Shown here: positions 8,132-32,269 of the stretch, piece after piece
How positions within the stretch are numbered: the first letter of the stretch is position 1
Layout of the letters: the number at the start of each line of letters is the position of its first letter
NCBI GenBank assembly: GCA_047495785.1
Contig: JBLDXI010000002.1
Coordinates: 744,001-808,000 of the forward strand
Direction: 5' to 3'
Length of the DNA stretch: 64,000 bases
Origin: Lepidodermella squamata
Lineage: Eukaryota > Animalia > Gastrotricha
The notes under the pieces: model-generated
The model's input: only the letters and a program-made list of their open reading frames with translations
Databases searched by the model: none
Told to the model about the DNA's origin: nothing
Program-made: the position numbers and the translations under genes

Positions 8132-9445
8132 GGTGAACTACTTTTCACTTCGAACAAAATGCGAATCCCAGCTTTTACAAAGTTCCTCGACAGACGCACT
8201 TATTTTCTAGTTAAATATTTATAGCAAAACCAAGGTGCACATGAAGGCTCTCCGAGTTCCAATCTGTTGCGAAGTAGTGCGTGAAAGGATGAATAAGTAA
8301 CATCAATTGTTCGATGTGATCACTACTTCACGAAAACAACTTATCGTCGCGCAAAATGCGGGGAAAAACGACCTCAGCAAATTGCCAAAACAAGCTAAGT
8401 GGTGGCAGAAAATCTCGGGACGCTCAATCAGCCGATACTTGACAACTTATTGACCTTGAAAACACAACCAAATGAGCGTGGAAACCTGGGCGTTTTGTCT
8501 GAAATTTTCGAGAACGCGATGAAAAGATTGTGGACTGCTGCGGATGAAAGGCGTCGTACCGATATCCAGTTGTCAACCTTCTATCATTATATTCAATATT
8601 CAGGGAGATTTCAGACTGTTTGAATGTCTGAAAATAAAGACGTCTCAGCCCAGCGGACCAAGTGTTTACTCTCGCAATTTCAAACATTTCAACTCCAGCT
8701 TGTTTTGGTCCGCTATCTGCTGGGTTCAATGGAGTTTTTTGGAACTCATCGGATCCTGTTTTAGCGGACCGCTTTATTTAAATCAGCCCCCTATTAAGGT
8801 GCAGTGCAACTTTCAGTCATAATTGGTCTCCTTAGATGTGCCACACTTGGCACCTAGTCGGCTCACTTCGATATTAACCCTGGTTAGGGTAGAATTGGTG
8901 ATTAGTGTGGTCCGCCGTGGAACTCAATGGATAAATGGTTAGATTTAGTTGCACCAAAAATAGGGTGACTTTTCGCACGAAGTTTGATAACATTTTTCTG
9001 CTACAGAGATTATCGTTATCTCCCAGTAACGATTTCCTTGCACCGAATCCAATCAATTCCTGAATATTATTGCCCGCTATTATGATAATAGATCACAATT
9101 AGAAACCACGACTGTTGAGGTAGCCAAATTTTCTGGAGATAATGCTCTAGGGCGGGATGAGTCATGGCACCGAAGCGGCTTCCTTATCTCAAGTCTCGAG
9201 AAACCATGAAATTTCCGGAAGTCACTAAAGAGGCCAGTGGTGATAAAACGCACGTGTTTATAATTTTTGTTATCTTGAAAAATAAATCCAGCTTCGTTGT
9301 GAAATTTGACCTTTTATCGCAAAAAAGCAGCGTCCGTTTGTTTGTTTTGGCGATAATAAAACCGGCGGTCTGCTATCTCCGCTGCTTTAAAACACAGCCG
9401 AGCACCGGATCTCGTTCAGTTGTTTCAGGCACTGTCTCTAGAAAC

Positions 9446-10603
9446 ATGAAATTCACGTTCGCGATTGTCGCTCTATTGGTGAGCTCCTGCTTCGCCGATG
9501 AGCTGTTGCGCATCAAGCTCCAGAAAATGCCGTCAGCCCGCGCGCTGCTCGGCGAGAAGTTCGGCCCGATGGTCCGCGCCGCCCTCCAGCGCAAGCACAG
9601 CGGCCTGCAGGGTCCCGAGCCACTGAGCAACTATTTGGACGCTCAGTACTACGGCCCCATCAGCCTCGGCACCCCGCCGCAGGACTTCCAGGTCATCTTC
9701 GACACTGGCTCGTCCAACCTGTGGGTCCCCTCGACCCGCTGCCGCGGCCTCGCCTGTCTGCTGCACCACCGCTACGACAGCACCAAGTCGAGCACCTACG
9801 TCGCTAACGGAACTTCGTTCTCGATCACCTATGGCTCGGGCTCCATGTCTGGCATCCTCAGCGCTGATGACATCACCATCGGAGGCTTGACCGCCAAGAC
9901 CGTCACCTTCGCCGAATCTGAGAAGGAACCCGCGCTGCCGTTCGCTACTGCCAAGTTCGACGGCATCCTCGGTATGGGCTACCCGACCATCTCTGTCGAC
10001 AAGGTCGTCCCAGTCTTCCAGGAATTCATCCGCCAGAAGGTTGTCTCGAAGCCCATCTTCTCGTTCTGGCTCGACCGCGATCCGAACAACCCAGACGGTG
10101 GTGAGCTGATCCTCGGCGGCTCAGACCCCAACCACTACACCGGAGCCTTCACCTACCTGCCCGTCGACCGCCAGGGCTACTGGCAGTTCAAGATGGACGG
10201 TATCAAGGTCGCTAACAGCGCTTTCTGCAACGGCGGCTGCGAGGCCATCGCCGATACTGGAACATCCCTCATCGCTGGCCCGAGCAAGGAGATCCGCGCC
10301 TTGAACAAGGCTATCGGAGCTACCCCAAGCATTGGCGGCGAGTACATCGTCGACTGCAACAGCATTGGCAGCATGCCGAACATCACCTTCATTCTGGCTA
10401 ACCGCGGATTCATCCTCCAGCCCAACGACTACGTCCTCAAGATCACCCAGGGCACCCAGACCCAGTGCCTCAGCGGCTTCCAGGGCATCGACATCCCGCC
10501 ACCAGCTGGTCCTCTATGGATCCTTGGCGACGTCTTCATTGGACGATTCTACGCCGAGTTCGACTTCGGTAACAACCGTGTCGGCTTCGCCACCGCCAAG
10601 TAA
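9446..10603 (+). CDS. CTSD: Cathepsin D (lysosomal aspartic protease), intronless, 385 aa
   Basis: Signal peptide MKFTFAIVALL, propeptide, NYLDAQYYG, catalytic FDTGSS and ADTGTS motifs, and the cathepsin-D polyproline loop DIPPPAGPLWILGD. AATAAA at 10676. Confidence 0.95.
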   Translation: MKFTFAIVALLVSSCFADELLRIKLQKMPSARALLGEKFGPMVRAALQRKHSGLQGPEPLSNYLDAQYYGPISLGTPPQDFQVIFDTGSSNLWVPSTRCRGLACLLHHRYDSTKSSTYVANGTSFSITYGSGSMSGILSADDITIGGLTAKTVTFAESEKEPALPFATAKFDGILGMGYPTISVDKVVPVFQEFIRQKVVSKPIFSFWLDRDPNNPDGGELILGGSDPNHYTGAFTYLPVDRQGYWQFKMDGIKVANSAFCNGGCEAIADTGTSLIAGPSKEIRALNKAIGATPSIGGEYIVDCNSIGSMPNITFILANRGFILQPNDYVLKITQGTQTQCLSGFQGIDIPPPAGPLWILGDVFIGRFYAEFDFGNNRVGFATAK

Positions 10604-13918: not shown

Positions 13919-15082
13919 ATGAGGCCGTTACTTTTATCGGCATGGATTTCGATTGCTTCAACGTCAGATATCCTCAAGATACACTACGATTCTCTCGAAA
14001 AACATCTCACCGAACAAAACTACCAAAAACTCTACGACGAATCTCGAATCACATGGGACATCTTTAACAAAACAACGGGCCCTTACTCAATCCTAGAAGT
14101 TCAAATCATTGACTACCTGCAATTCAGCGCCTTCCACCTGGAACGATTCAGAGAAGCTAGAGATTTATGCGAATGTGCGGTCAACAAATCGCTGCACTTT
14201 GGCGCTCGCGTCAAATTTTACGAGGAACTGCTTTTCTATCAATACTTGAAAAATGAGAACATGACTGACTTCACTGCAAAGGAGAAACTTGAATTTGCGA
14301 AAAAATTAGCGACAACGCGAAGATTCGACTCATGCAATGAAGAGCGAGCCTTAAATCCCAAACTATTCTGCAGATACGACAACCGAAATCTGCACCCTTT
14401 GTTGATTTTATCGCCTATTAAGGAGGAATATTTACATTTCGACCCGATTGTCGTTCTGTTTCACGATATGATTTCTAAGTCCCAATTATTGAGCCTAATT
14501 TCTTCAGCAAGCAATTCTATGGTCGATTCTTTGGTTGACAATGCCGCTGGAGGGGTTCAGCGATTTGACATTCGAAGGTCGAAATCTGCAATATTGGAAT
14601 CAGCACTTTTCCCGAAGCTCAACCTCGATCTTAAGTCTAAGTCGATTACAGCTTACGTTGGGCTTAAAATCGATGGCGAAGGTGCCGAGAGGTATCAAGT
14701 CGCTAACTACGATATTGGCGGCAATTATGCACCACATCACGATTACCTGTACCCGAACGAAACCGGCAGTCGAGGAGATCGAATCGCGACTCTATTGATT
14801 TATCTGAATGACGTTGAAAGCGGGGGTGGAACCGTGTTTACCCACCTTAAATTTCGCGTTTTGCCCAATCCTGGCGCGGCGTTGTTTTGGTACAATTACC
14901 AGAAGAATGAAACCCCTGATCGGATGTCGTACCATGGTGGGTGTCCGGTGCTGAATGGTGAGAAATGGGTGTCGAATAAGTGGTTCAGGCTTCGTGGGCA
15001 ATTCTTACATAGGCCTTGCGGCTTGGACAAGTCCGAGCAATTTACGCCTGAAGATTTTGTTCTGCCCGAGTGGCTTCGGTGA
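13919..15082 (+). CDS. Prolyl 4-hydroxylase alpha-subunit-like protein, intronless
   Basis: LxCRY...PxLxLxPxKEE, YQVANYxIGGxYxPHHD (HxD), GDRIATLLIYLNDVESGGGTVF, HGGCPVLxGEKW motifs. Confidence 0.92.
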   Translation: MRPLLLSAWISIASTSDILKIHYDSLEKHLTEQNYQKLYDESRITWDIFNKTTGPYSILEVQIIDYLQFSAFHLERFREARDLCECAVNKSLHFGARVKFYEELLFYQYLKNENMTDFTAKEKLEFAKKLATTRRFDSCNEERALNPKLFCRYDNRNLHPLLILSPIKEEYLHFDPIVVLFHDMISKSQLLSLISSASNSMVDSLVDNAAGGVQRFDIRRSKSAILESALFPKLNLDLKSKSITAYVGLKIDGEGAERYQVANYDIGGNYAPHHDYLYPNETGSRGDRIATLLIYLNDVESGGGTVFTHLKFRVLPNPGAALFWYNYQKNETPDRMSYHGGCPVLNGEKWVSNKWFRLRGQFLHRPCGLDKSEQFTPEDFVLPEWLR

Positions 15083-25772: not shown

Positions 25773-27571
25773 TTAAATTATCTCGACAATCAGGTCGTCC
25801 AGGTAATTTTTCGTCTCGTCATGCTCCGATTCGTTTTCATACTCGAAAGCTGCCTCTAAAATTTCAACGTCATGCTTCGTTGCCTGGCCGTTGTGGTAGA
25901 AGCGGCCCCAAACCTGGCCAGCCGTGACCTTTTGACCCCGAATCGGGGTGCGTGGGAAATTCAGCTCAATGCCAACAGCCGGGTCGATTACATCCGAACT
26001 CCTGAGGCGACCGGCGCCGAGTCGCTGAAGCGTGACGCCGATCACCTTCGAATCAATAACGCCGACATATCCGTCTTTCTTCGCCTTCAATTCCTCGACG
26101 AATTCGGCCTTCGGCATCAAATCCCTCGGATTCCCATCGCCGAGAATTAATTGATCCGCGTAATTAGGATCAACGCCTTGAAACACGCAAATGTCTCGGA
26201 ATGCTTTCAAAGCCGATTTGTTGCGCAGCGCCTCTAGAATTTTTGCTTTCCCGTCCTCGAAATCTTTCGCCTTCCCAACAGTGGCCAAAAGATGACCGCC
26301 AAAAGCGGCGACCAGCCTAATTATATCAGGCGCAGATGAATTCTCGGGGCCGAGTCGAAGGCATTCAATGCATTCGGCAATTTCGGAGGCGTTTCCAATG
26401 GCAAGACCGATAGGGCTGTCATTTCGTGTCAGCATAGCGGTTGTTGGGGTGCCCATTCGCCTAGCTAGAGTGGCTAAAGATACCGCCAGCTAGTGAAAAT
26501 AATGAAAATAAATGATTTTCTGATATTCGAATAAAAATTCCGATTTTTCGGATTTTTTTTAATTTTTTTTAATTTTTCTGGAATTTTCGTATTTTTTTTT
26601 TAAATTTTCCAATAATTTTCTACTCATGATATTTTTTCCAATTTCATAATTTCATAATTTCGTAAAATAATTCCGGAATAATTTTTTTGAAATCTTTGAA
26701 ATTCAGTTTAAAATTGAGGCATTTTTGTATTTCAATTTTGGACCAAAAAAGAACAATTTTCTTACGTTTCTCGCTTCGTTGATATCCGCCAGTTGACCAC
26801 CTCGGCCGAATTTAACGTCCAAAATCAGGGCACTCAACTGCTCGGCAACTTTCTTACTAATGATAGACGCTAGGATAAGAGGGACACTAGTAACCGTAGC
26901 CGTGACGTCTCGGTGCGCGTACAGTACGGCATCAGCCGGGCACAATTCGCCGGTTTGACCGGAAATGCAACCGCCAACGGTAGCCAGAGCCTCGAGAACT
27001 TTGTCGGAATGCAATTTCACGCTGTAGCCGCGAATTGCGGTCTCGAGCTTGTCCAAAGTACCGCCGGTGTGACCTAGACCGCGGCCGGAAATCATTGGGA
27101 CTTTGACTCCACAAGCGACTAAAGCCGGTACCAGAACGATGCTATGAAAAAATGAAAAAAATCATTTATTAAAATGTATAAAAAAACAATAAAAAAATAT
27201 AAATTTTAATCAATTAAAAAATAATTATAATAATTTATAAATTAAAAAATTATGAATTTTTACCTGGTTTTATCGCCGACTCCGCCCGTGCTGTGTTTAT
27301 CGACAACCAGGTGCCGCCATTCCTCCGGGTACGGCCCAATTTTCGACCCACTCTCGACCATCAAATGCGTGAAAGCTTGCGTTTCGTTGTCATTGAGGCC
27401 GCGAATGTACATCGCCATCAACATGGCGCCAATTTGCGACTCTTGAACTCGACCCGGGTGCTCTTTATCCGCAACCGCGGTGACAAAATACGCGATCTCA
27501 TCCTGCGTCAATTCGCCGCCGTCTCGCTTTTTCGCAATCAACTGGCCAATGCTAACTGCTGGTTTCGACAT
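25773..27571 (-). CDS. TYMP: Thymidine phosphorylase
   Basis: Exons 27571-27264, 27141-26766, 26489-25773. Motifs VDKHSTGGVGDK, MISGRGLGHTGGTLDKLE, RDVTATV, ASIISKK, LDVKFG, LGAGR. Confidence 0.95.
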
Positions 27572-28225
27572 TTTTCAGAAATAATAATTGCAAAACTCGA
27601 TTATTTAAGCGTTTGCTTTGATGATAAGAAATTTCCTTAGAAGAGAGCTGTGACCCGGGGTCAGATGGCATCATAATGACTTTCTCGTCGCCGTCTTATC
27701 AACGCCGTAGCAGTCCATTGTTGGCACTTAATCTGAGCAGTTATGACATTTTCTTATCTCTAAAAGCTGGAAAGGTGAACACAGCCGCGTAAACGGACTT
27801 GACACGGAATAGAAAGATATTAAGTTATAAACGGAATCGGTTATACAAACAATTATTTTTTGAAAAATTAAAAAAAAATCAAGATTCAAATTATTTATTA
27901 GAAAAATACCTAAAATTAAAAAATTCATTCAAATTTCAGACAAATCTTAAAAAATGCAAAATAAGATTTGAAAAATTTAAATTTTCAAATTGAAAAAATT
28001 GGAAATTTAAACAAAATTTTATATTTTAAAACGAAGCGGCTTTAAACTTGATTAATCATCAGTCTCGATAATAATATTGACTTTCATGAGTCGCGTGTTG
28101 GTCGCGTGCTTGTGACAAAATCTTTCTCGATATCTTTCTAAAACTCGAAAAATTTTCAAATAAAATTAGCACGTAAAATTACGAATTCCTCCCTCGACAT
28201 CGGTTTTACTTTGAATTTTTGAATT

Positions 28226-29845
28226 ATGCCTGATCGCGTTATAGGCGTTACGCCGCATCGGGCGGCGTCGATTTTCGACACATTGAACACCGGCAACGGG
28301 TTGATTTTTAACATTTTACTACTCGGCGATGAGGCGGTTGGCAAATCAACGCTAGCTGCTCGTTTTGCATGCGGTGAAGAACGTAGTACTTACATTCCAA
28401 CTATTGGCGTCGATTTTTATTTTCGTCAAACAACGGTCGATGGTTATCACTGCAAACTTCAGGTTGGAAATTGATCAGAAAAAATTCCATAATATTTTTA
28501 AAATTAGTTATGGGACACGGCTGGTCGAAATAAATTCATGACGTTCCTCAACGAAAAGTAACAATTATTCTAGATTTTTCTCGGAATTTTATAATTTTGT
28601 TTCAGTTATTTTCACAAAGCCAATTGCGTGATTTTGATGTACGACGTATCGAAGAAATCGTCATTCAAAGAAATGAAATTATGGGTCGAACATATTAAAA
28701 AGGTGACCTAATTTTCATATTATGCAATTTTTTCTTGAATTATTTGTTTTTTTTTAGCTCTGTTCCAATTGTGAGCTAGTTATTGTCGCAAACAAGGCCG
28801 ATTTAGGTCGCCAGGTCGACGAAAAGGACGCTCGCGAATTAGCGGCCAAATACGATTTCGACTTCATGGAAGTTTCCAGCCTCGACTCGTGCCAAGTCGA
28901 CCGGCTATTTTTAAGCCTCAGTCGCGCCATGATTTTGTCCCACCTTCGCCGCCAATGCCATCAAATGACGCCCCTGAAAACTGTAGGAGCGCCGAAAAAA
29001 ATTGCGAACAGAAAAACTTACCGAGAAGATTGCGATGTTTTATTCAAAGTTTTACTCAGTAAGTCGAATTCTAAAATTCCACCTTAAAATTTGCAATTTT
29101 TTCTAGTCGGCGAGTCTAGTGTTGGAAAAACGAGTTTGATGCGCCGTTTTGTTCACGATCAATTCAACAATAGCTTCAAAGCAACGGTTGGTATCGATTT
29201 CGAGAGCCACATGACTCGAATTGATGGCAAACTCGTGAAAATGCAAATTTGGGACACTGCGGGCCAGGAAAAATTTCGCTCACTATCACCGCAATATTAC
29301 CGAGGCGCTGATGCTGTCATTGTGGTTTACGACATCGGCAATCGGCACTCATTCGATGGAGTTCTATCTTGGGTTCAACGAGTTCAAATCGTAAGAAATC
29401 TGGAATTATTTATTGCATTAATAATTTAATCAAATACTATAATTAATTATTTTATTTATTAATTTTTAATATTAATTTTTCTTTCAGCAAAATACAAATG
29501 ACACCTTAATGGCCCTTGTAGGCAATAAATGTGACATTAACCCAAATCTTCGAGAGGTTGAGGAAAATCTTGGGAAACAGGTACAAATTTTTGCAATTAT
29601 TCGAAATTTTCCATAATTTTTCAAAATAGATTGCCGGGAGCCTTGGCTTAGATTTATTCATGGAAACTAGTGCTAAGGCGAAGATAAACGTCTCTGAATT
29701 GTTCGATAATTTGGCCCGGAGGACCCTGGAGAAAAAATGCATAGACCTGAATGGCCTGGACTCATCTGATCAAACAATCGACGATTCAATTATCAAGCCC
29801 GTCAGCCTTGGTGCAAATTGGAAAAAGAGTTGCTGCTCAAATTGA
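28226..29845 (+). CDS. Tandem double-Rab GTPase (two Rab domains in one 425-aa chain, C-terminal CCSN)
   Basis: Exons 28226-28462, 28508-28557, 28606-28702, 28758-29058, 29107-29390, 29488-29580, 29630-29845 (1278 nt, in phase). Domain 1: GDEAVGKS, TIGVDF, WDTAGR, NKAD, EVSS. Domain 2: GESSVGKT, TVGIDF, WDTAGQE, YYRGA, GNKCD, ETSAK. Confidence 0.88.
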
Positions 29846-29973
29846 TGCTCAAAATGATGACAACGAATTTATTTGATCTTAAATTTTGATTTTATCCATC
29901 TTATTGGAAAGCAATAGAAAATAACGTTATACGCTACGTAATAAAACGCGACATCAATAAACAGCCTCATGCG

Positions 29974-30250: not shown

Positions 30251-32269
30251 ATGAAGTTTTCAACTTTTTTGGCTGGATTGGCCTGTTTAATTGTCAAAAT
30301 TCACGGTGATAGCGTCAAAGGCATTTGCTTTGTGCCATCGCAAACTGCTTACGATGTTGGCGATAAAGCGGCGTATTGGACGTACGACTCAACTGGGAAG
30401 ACGGCGAATGTGCTCGAAGTTGTAAGTGTTAGCGACAAACTGGTTTTGGTCTGCTCGGGAGGTGGGAAAGCGACAAAAAGCGGAAAAATCAACTGCAACG
30501 CAAATGACGGGTCTTGGTCGCCGCCGGACATCAAGTGCGAAGGTGGGACAACAACAACAACGACAACAACAACAACCACTACAACAACCACTACAAAACC
30601 AACGACTACAACGACTACCACAAAGTCTGCAGCTACTACAACTACTACTACAGCCTCGAAATCTACGGCTTCAACTGCTACGACGAAGGCAGCAGCTACT
30701 ACCACTACCACGACAAAAGCTCCAGTAGCAACATGTTCACTTCCAACTTACGACGCCGGTGATTCGGCTGCGTTTTGGACGAAGAATCAAACGAGCCAGG
30801 TAAAGGCGGAGGCAAGTTCAACCTTCGTGAAGGGAGCTCGAGCTTTCCTCGTCTGTCCAACTGGCAAATTGCCATCAAATTTCGACGGCGCCATCGTTTG
30901 TTCTGGTGATAAAACTTTGACCTGGCAGCCTGCGTCCTTAAAATGTGTATCAACCTGCGCTGTGCCGAAGCAGTCGGAGTATAACGTATCTGACAATAGT
31001 TCGTTCTGGCGGTCGACGTTAAAGGGAGAACGCTTGTCAATTGGCGCCTTAATCCCGCTGAGTTTCCAAATCTCGGTTCAATGTAACGGCTCGAGTAAGC
31101 CGAAGCCGTCATCTGCAGTGACGTGCCAACCTGATGGTTCGTGGAAGCCAACTGGAATTGTTTGCAAAGCCCCTGTTGCTCCCGTTCCGAAGCCAGCAGT
31201 TCCTACAGTCTTAAGTGTAGTAGCGAACAAAACTGAACAAGCAAAATTAGGTAACAATTTAAAAGTTTCCAGTTAAAAAATTGGAATTAAAAATTTGGGG
31301 ATATCTCGCGTAAATATATTAAATTGATTTTTTTTCAATTGATTGAAATTTGGATTTCAGAATTCTTTATATTGGAAATGATATTTTTGAAATTTTAAAA
31401 ATAATTTATTATTTATTTTGATTTGTTTTACATTTTAAATTGTTCAAATTTTCTAATTATCAAAATATGTTTAATCATCACTTCATGTATATTACATTTT
31501 CTGGTCTATTTCGTCTATTTCGACCATCTGCATATTTTCCCCTAGTTGCGGCAGTTAACAATGCAGCAGGCAACGTTAACCGATGTGGAGTACCTCGTAT
31601 GAACTGCGTTCGCAAGCTCCGCTTTAACACAACAGGCAAATACTACACATTTGACTGTGCAGGCGAGTGTACGCTTCAGGGCAACAACACAATAACGCAA
31701 GACGACGAAACGGGAGAGTGGACGCCGAATGGCTTCTGCAACCGCACTTTTGTTCCTTGCAATGTCGCCTTGGGTGATCGGTTTTTCAAAGTTAAGGCTG
31801 CTATGCTGTGGGAGGATGCCCAACAGAATTGCATCGATGACGCTGCTAAACGTAATAAGAAGGCTCGTCTAGCTGTTATAAGGAATTCGGACCAACAAAA
31901 ATACATAACTGCAAATCTAGTGTGTAAGTGCCATTCAGCCCACAACAACTTTATTTTCAACCTTTTCGTTTATTTTAAGCTGATGCGACGAATGCGACCG
32001 AATGTACGGGCTATTGGATTGGAGCCAGGGTGACTGATGCTGCTAATGGCACTGGGAAAGTTGTACGCTGGGATACAGATGGAAGCAAGCTTGAACTCGC
32101 GAATTGGGCCGACAAGCAACCTGACCGAGTTGGATGCACGAAGCCAACTGGGGATGACGCCGATTTGGCTACTTGCGTTCGCGTTGGCAAAACGGGTCTT
32201 TGGAGCGATGTCTATTGCGCTACCGACAAGGTCGAGGGCGCAATCTGTGAATACGTGTGTAACAGTTAA
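30251..32269 (+). CDS. Secreted Sushi/CCP-like + Thr-rich mucin-like linker + C-type lectin protein (gene 2)
   Basis: Exons 30251-31250, 31546-31923, 31980-32269. Closely similar to gene 1, with an extra N-terminal CCP and a poly-Thr tract (30548-30716). Confidence 0.88.

Follow-up and report, generated by a model that had tools for sequence, protein, structure and literature searches.

Does a locus in the gastrotrich Lepidodermella squamata encode a single protein with two Rab domains, and if it does, do both of these domains act as switches? Rabs are normally single-domain switches, and they communicate with one another through GEFs, GAPs, and effectors that are separate proteins. The locus lies at 28226-29845 (+) of the window, by which we mean the whole stretch of 64,000 nucleotides of DNA that was analysed. 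The best explanation, to which we assign a probability of about 60% on the basis of its sequence and that of one ortholog, is a single gene for a 425-aa double Rab, in which a hydrolysis-impaired, Rab-like domain (domain 1) would be carried by a cycling, prenylated Rab (domain 2).

Gene structure and splice sites

Seven exons at 28226-29845 (+), joined by script, give a frame of 1278 nt (425 codons plus stop) with 0 internal stops, the sole stop being the terminal one. The initial annotation had placed two Rab G domains in one reading frame, and this holds for the joined exons, which are stop-free and match Pfam Ras in both halves. All six introns are of the GT..AG type, are 45-97 nt long, and have T-rich acceptors. 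The features described in the following are all on the + strand.

Domain 1 is spread over the first four exons. Exon 1 (28226-28462; Pfam Ras E 1e-10) opens with the ATG, two codons 3' of an in-frame TGA, and encodes a 25-aa N-terminal extension, strand 1 of domain 1, the P-loop GDEAVGKS (28325-28348), and switch I with RabF1 (PTIGVDF). Exon 2 (28508-28557) carries G3 as WDTAGR and the start of a divergent switch II (NKFMTFLNE). A CGA codon at 28526-28528, where the initial annotation had placed it, encodes the Arg of DTAGR, and the aligned codon of the ortholog described below is CAG (Gln). Exon 3 (28606-28702; Pfam Ras E 2.8e-6) encodes YFHKA where the RabF4 motif YYRGA is expected, the RabF5-like LMYDVS, and helix 3. 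As for the 5' end of the gene, the first AG met on going 5' from the start codon is that of a TTAG at 28167-28170 (+), 55 nt before the ATG, which is a candidate leader acceptor; the stretch between the TTAG and the start codon has no ATG.

The two domains meet in exon 4 (28758-29058; Pfam Ras E 7.4e-9), which we call the junction exon. It encodes G4 (NKAD, 28791-28802), G5 (EVSS, 28869-28880), and the last helix of domain 1 with a conserved RAMILS, followed by a basic linker of ~32 aa and strand 1 of domain 2 (DVLFKVLL). Its 3' end reads ...DCDVLFKVLL, and a codon split as A|TC over exons 4 and 5 supplies an Ile, after which GESSVGKT follows. The exon ends and this split codon agree with the earlier reading that the exon runs from G4/G5 of domain 1 into the first strand of domain 2 without a stop. 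Intron 4 (29059-29106) is 48 nt long, of phase 1, and reads GTAAGT...TCTAG; the ortholog has no intron at the matching site. If intron 4 is retained, the frame ends at an in-frame stop at 29085-29087, as had also been pointed out before.

Exon 5 (29107-29390; Pfam Ras E 3.4e-35) covers domain 2 from its P-loop (GESSVGKT, 29109-29132) through switch I (TVGIDF) and G3 (WDTAGQ, with DTAGQ at 29253-29267) to RabF5, including KFRSLS, YYRGA, and VVYDIG. Exon 6 (29488-29580) adds G4 (NKCD), and exon 7 (29630-29845; Pfam Ras E 1.9e-3) adds G5 (ETSAK), the last helix, a hypervariable tail, and a prenylation-type C-terminus, CCSN (29831-29842), before the stop at 29843-29845. Two AATAAA hexamers (29940 and 29956, together 29940-29961), ~95-115 nt 3' of the stop, are candidate poly(A) signals. 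From 28535 to 29523, the + strand has no AATAAA, hence there is none after domain 1.

Several other genes of the window were noted along the way. A 341-aa ORF at 30251-31276 (+) has a signal-peptide-like start, long, mucin-like Thr runs, Cys-spaced modules, and a weak Sushi match, and its product is probably a secreted or surface glycoprotein. A single-exon gene at 9164-10603 (+) encodes a cathepsin D-like aspartic protease with an N-terminal extension of ~160 aa before Pfam Asp, and its best relatives, spread across many invertebrate phyla, are 60-70% identical. A 387-aa ORF at 13919-15082 (+) has a 2OG-Fe(II) oxygenase domain (PF13640).

An ortholog from environmental contigs

The initial annotation had proposed looking for orthologs of like architecture, and one was found. 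A HMMER search of 1.84 billion representative sequences, with exon 4 alone as query, returned one clear relative, a 222-aa protein (P0003) that is 49% identical and spans the G5 region of a domain 1, a linker, and a domain 2. This protein is encoded on three environmental contigs in ENA (L001-L003). From the sequence of L001, we built an ortholog of 517 aa with five exons (L001 5362-5643, 5696-5745, 5812-5908, 5980-6648, and 6703-7158), which has the matching domain order and ends in CCW. Over the ortholog gene, the three contigs share 99.7% identity; L001 differs from L002 and L003 by a small substitution cluster in exon 5 (L001:6772-6777), and there is one intron indel, so the contigs are probably strains or haplotypes of one species.

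In the ortholog, L001:5980-6648 is one uninterrupted exon of 669 nt, in which the second half of domain 1 (from G4 on) is followed by the linker and by the first half of domain 2; the two domains are therefore joined there without any splice. Once intron 4 is taken out, the window is exactly colinear with this exon (CDVL(F/L)KVLL(I/V)GE(S/A)SVGK), and an indel in the linker between the two species is in frame. Four introns agree between the two genes in both aligned codon and phase (80/95, phase 0; 96/111, phase 2; 129/144, phase 0; 324/367, phase 0), while introns 4 and 6 of the window are extra relative to the ortholog. The two proteins are about 45-59% identical. Taken together, these comparisons make it very probable that the fused double-Rab gene is real.

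The two loci are orthologous, with syntenic neighbours in common, namely thymidine phosphorylase and three upstream genes, and the window at 18039-22748 matches L001:110-3387 as a syntenic block. The phosphorylase gene is a multi-exon thymidine/pyrimidine-nucleoside phosphorylase (Glycos_trans_3N, PYNP_C) at 25773-27571 (-) of the window and at L001:7695-9166 (+). It adjoins the double Rab in both loci; in the window it is inverted and on the opposite side, which points to a local rearrangement inside the syntenic block.

Scans of JGI metagenomes, with two alignments, gave no further ortholog and one ordinary Rab (L004). A word search with P0003, which reaches proteins of up to about 390 aa, returned only the protein itself and ordinary Rabs, and a structure search of the ESM Atlas with a fragment of the ortholog returned only generic Rab and large-Rab clusters. 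In these searches, the window and one environmental species were the only places where the family with the domain 1 signature was seen.

Assignment of the two domains

Searches of Pfam and of solved structures were run exon by exon, and the joined 425-aa model was used only for alignments, in which it was compared with itself, with the window, and with the fetched loci and proteins. Pfam Ras (PF00071) matches exons 1, 3, and 4 in domain 1 and exons 5 and 7 in domain 2; across every exon, Pfam returned only P-loop GTPase families and no EF-hand match. The nearest solved structures of exon 5 are Rab8A (7e-30) followed by Rab1A and Rab6 (E about 1e-29), and those of exon 1 are Rab1A, Rab35, and Rab8A (E about 1e-9). 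The match of both domains to Ras/Rab is thus far beyond chance. No single subfamily stands out for domain 2, the bit scores of exon 5 being nearly equal for Rab8A (106), Rab1A (104), Rab6 (103), and Rab7 (100).

The consensus strings of the Rab family motifs RabF1 to RabF5 are IGVDF, KLQIWDTAGQE, RFRSIT, YYRGA, and LVYDIT. In the alignment with named Rabs, domain 2 has all five (VGIDF, KMQIWDTAGQE, KFRSLS, YYRGA, and VVYDIG); the RabF motif set as such has been described previously (PMC3504004). It also has every G motif, from G1 (GESSVGKT) and the switch I Thr (TVGIDF) to WDTAGQ, NKCD, and ETSAK, and it remains canonical in the ortholog (GE(S/A)SVGKT, TVGIDF, WDTAGQ, YYRGA, NKCD, and ETSAK). 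At the C-terminus, the window has CCSN and the ortholog has CCW, both of which are among the accepted forms of the Cys motif (CC, CXC, CCX, or CCXX). Domain 2 can thus be regarded as an ordinary Rab with a CC-type end that is predicted to be prenylated, as the initial annotation had described it.

Domain 1 has neither set in full. Of the G motifs, G1, the switch I Thr, DTAG, and NKAD are kept, but G3 reads DTAGR and G5 reads EVSS; of the RabF motifs, RabF1 (IGVDF) and the F5-like LMYDVS are kept, but F3 and F4 have given way to KFMTFL and YFHKA. The divergent switch II and the G5 EVSS, both mentioned in the initial annotation, were read in the same alignment. The domain is internal and has no terminal Cys motif, and it is without a lipid anchor of its own. 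By best match, domain 1 would be classed as a divergent Rab-like domain and not as a canonical Rab.

Motifs of domain 1 in the two species

A motif table was drawn up from the alignment with named Rabs. In domain 1, G1 is GDEAVGKS in the window and GAQCVGKS in the ortholog, and switch I is PTIGVDF and PTIGIDF, respectively. G3 is WDTAGR in the window and WDTAGQ in the ortholog; G4 is NKAD in the window and N-ING-AD, without the Lys, in the ortholog; and G5 is EVSS and EVNC. Common to both copies of domain 1 are an extra residue inserted in switch II, the string MTFLNE-YF, YF(H/Q)(K/R)A in place of YYRGA, and RAMILS at the end of the last helix. Domain 1 thus keeps its phosphate and Mg ligands (the P-loop, the switch I Thr, and DTAG), while its positions for hydrolysis and guanine contact are lost or drifting, differently in each lineage, beside a novel switch II face that is conserved.

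It is worth mentioning what the ortholog means for the Arg of DTAGR. The earlier suggestion that this Arg could act as a built-in finger is unlikely, because domain 1 of the ortholog has DTAGQ, and the Gln rules out a built-in arginine finger as a family feature. The Arg seems to be lineage-specific, and the CGA at 28526-28528 may also be a polymorphism or a base error. Substitutions of the G3 Gln, as in Rab25 (DTAGL), Rab24 (DTAGS), and Ras Q61R, lower intrinsic hydrolysis and favour the GTP form. The earlier prediction that domain 1 is GTPase-deficient is therefore reasonable by its sequence for L. squamata, but it does not extend to the ortholog as far as the loss of the Gln is concerned. 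TBC RabGAPs provide both an Arg and a Gln in trans (PMC5902221), and since they bring their own Gln, loss of the cis-Gln alone is no proof that domain 1 is locked on.

Selection and ancestry of the domains

The two domains are conserved to a similar degree between the window and the ortholog, with core identities of 54% for domain 1 and 59% for domain 2, as compared to 34% for the linker and 37% for the C-terminal tail. Where a residue is identical and its codon fourfold degenerate, the two species have the same third base in only 11/33 cases in domain 1 and 14/41 cases in domain 2. The silent sites are thus saturated, so purifying selection has acted on both domains over a long divergence, and domain 1 is not a decaying relic.

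The best matches between the two proteins are reciprocal domain by domain (53% for domain 1 with domain 1, 58% for domain 2 with domain 2). Domain 1 and domain 2 of the window are 35% identical (105 bits), whereas domain 1 reaches up to 126 bits with ordinary Rabs. A recent internal duplication was ruled out, since domain 1 is nearer to ordinary Rabs than to domain 2. When the exon ends are placed on the alignment, one intron position is common to both domains (HIKK|LCSN and RVQI|QNTN), and it may be an old Rab intron.

Proposed working of the double Rab and alternative explanations

In the mechanism that we propose, domain 2 would be recognised by REP and RabGGTase and then geranylgeranylated, and its cycle on and off the membrane would be controlled by GEF, GAP, and GDI. 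Domain 1, towed on the flexible basic linker, would remain nucleotide-bound and offer a slow or non-hydrolysing second binding surface for partners of its own. The recruitment of these partners would be gated by the membrane cycle of domain 2. We hold this gating mechanism at somewhat less than even odds, below the double-Rab reading itself. The broader picture, in which a lineage-restricted and probably gastrotrich Rab pair tethers a hydrolysis-impaired, Rab-like module with a conserved effector face to a cycling, prenylated Rab, is offered more tentatively still. If it is true, one GDI/GEF cycle would bring a constitutively "on" second Rab surface to the membrane, and the protein would in effect work as a Rab cascade, or as a coincidence device, that is hard-wired; no device of this kind has been described. 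The earlier suggestion that the protein could link two trafficking steps is speculative, and the initial interpretation as a whole is borne out in part.

The alternative that fares best is that both domains are working switches, each with a GEF and a GAP, in a single-chain, two-input device such as a Rab cascade or a coincidence detector. In favour of this, the P-loop, the switch I Thr, and DTAG of domain 1 are retained, its NKAD is intact in the window, its catalytic Gln is kept in the ortholog, and it is under constraint equal to that on domain 2; TBC GAPs, moreover, can do without the Rab's own Gln. However, the core-motif lesions differ between the two species (Gln to Arg in the window, absence of the G4 Lys in the ortholog) and G5 is degenerate in both, a pattern that fits relaxed constraint on the catalytic cycle better than conservation of that cycle. 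We therefore consider two working switches unlikely.

The same lesions could be read more radically, with domain 1 as a nucleotide-free pseudoGTPase that serves as a structural scaffold or as an intramolecular regulator packing on domain 2. A switch II remodelled with an insertion, YF(H/Q)(K/R)A for YYRGA, the degenerate G5, and the broken G4 of the ortholog would all agree with this, but both species have GxxxxGKS, the switch I Thr, and DTAG in intact form, which is unusual for nucleotide-free pseudoGTPases and leaves a nucleotide-free domain 1 less likely again than a second working switch.

Least likely of all is that two neighbouring genes have been wrongly joined into a double Rab, or that the locus yields mainly separate products. 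One such product would be a domain 1 protein cut short by the stop in intron 4 (29085-29087), and another would be a domain 2 Rab that begins at Met185 or Met197, e.g., through internal spliced-leader trans-splicing. Retention of intron 4 does give a stop, and an acceptor-like TTTTTAAG + CAG in exon 4, 7-15 nt 5' of the Met185 ATG (28905-28930 (+)), could in principle yield a message for domain 2 only, but the ortholog has neither an intron nor a stop at the junction, has both halves in one exon, differs by an in-frame linker indel, and is without the acceptor-like motif before Met185, while in the window no poly(A) hexamer follows domain 1 and the exon that ends domain 1 also encodes strand 1 of domain 2. 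As additions to the fused protein, separate products may arise by retention of intron 4 or when translation begins internally, at Met185 or Met197. We also considered an operon with two Rab cistrons. The first in-frame Met of exon 5 falls 3' of the P-loop, which excludes domain 2 as a downstream cistron of its own; with a stop-free spliced frame, no usable start after intron 4, and a single exon in the ortholog, the operon was ruled out.

Maintained by selection in two distant species, a double Rab would amount to a natural experiment, in which two Rab surfaces are wired in one molecule, and it could reveal the role of a Rab-like domain freed from cycling. Its practical weight is modest, as the family is seen in only two taxa and as public data already contain unrelated tandem-Rab ORFs that have gone unnoticed.

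Comparison with known systems

The closest single-domain relatives are found in the Rab1/Rab8/Rab35 group, with which domain 2 agrees in its G1-G5 and RabF-type motifs and in its CCXX end. The double Rab differs from this group in having two G domains per chain, and its domain 1 differs in lacking the catalytic Gln, RabF3/F4, and a prenylation site. Domain 1 of the window resembles the Gln-less small GTPases (Rab25, Rab24, and Ras Q61R) in that the G3 Gln is replaced, here by Arg; however, these are single-domain proteins, whereas the double Rab has two domains and the substitution is not conserved in its ortholog.

The large Rabs (Rab44, Rab45/RASEF, and CRACR2A) are described as having an N-terminal EF-hand and coiled coil (PMC7645795). 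Like the double Rab, they place a long N-terminal add-on before a C-terminal Rab domain, but their add-on is an EF-hand/coiled coil, while that of the double Rab is a second G domain; with neither an EF-hand match nor a coiled coil, the double Rab is not a large Rab. Miro is the textbook protein with two small-GTPase domains and has a C-terminal transmembrane anchor. Miro (RHOT1/2) is described as carrying two Ras-superfamily G domains per polypeptide, the N- and C-terminal ones being mutually divergent (PMC9510121). It thus shares with the double Rab the presence of two G domains in one polypeptide. However, EF-hand pairs lie between the G domains of Miro, whereas the double Rab has only a linker of ~32 aa, no EF-hand match, and no transmembrane anchor, ends in the prenylation motif CCSN, and has two domains that are both of the Rab type; it is thus not a Miro.

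The initial annotation had stated that the standard architecture of Rabs does not include tandem G domains. Our literature searches for tandem or double Rab-Rab proteins agree with this, as they found no paper, including on the multi-Rab proteins that are public; public sequence data, on the other hand, contain unrelated proteins with two or three Rab domains. For example, KAL5008153.1 (P0001) from the bivalve Solemya velum is annotated with three Rab domains, P0011 is a single ORF of 399 aa from a TARA Oceans scaffold with two Rab domains and a CC end, and P0026 is a single ORF of 337 aa with two Ras domains. Two of these proteins are encoded by uninterrupted ORFs on metagenome contigs (L005:327-1526 and L006:139-1152). 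These proteins are not orthologs of the double Rab: their domains are canonical or are recent duplicates of each other, they are 30-40% identical to exon 4, and they are without the domain 1 signature (MTFLNE-YF, RAMILS). What they have in common with it is the architecture itself, two or three Ras/Rab domains in tandem, and this tandem-Rab architecture recurs in public sequence data.
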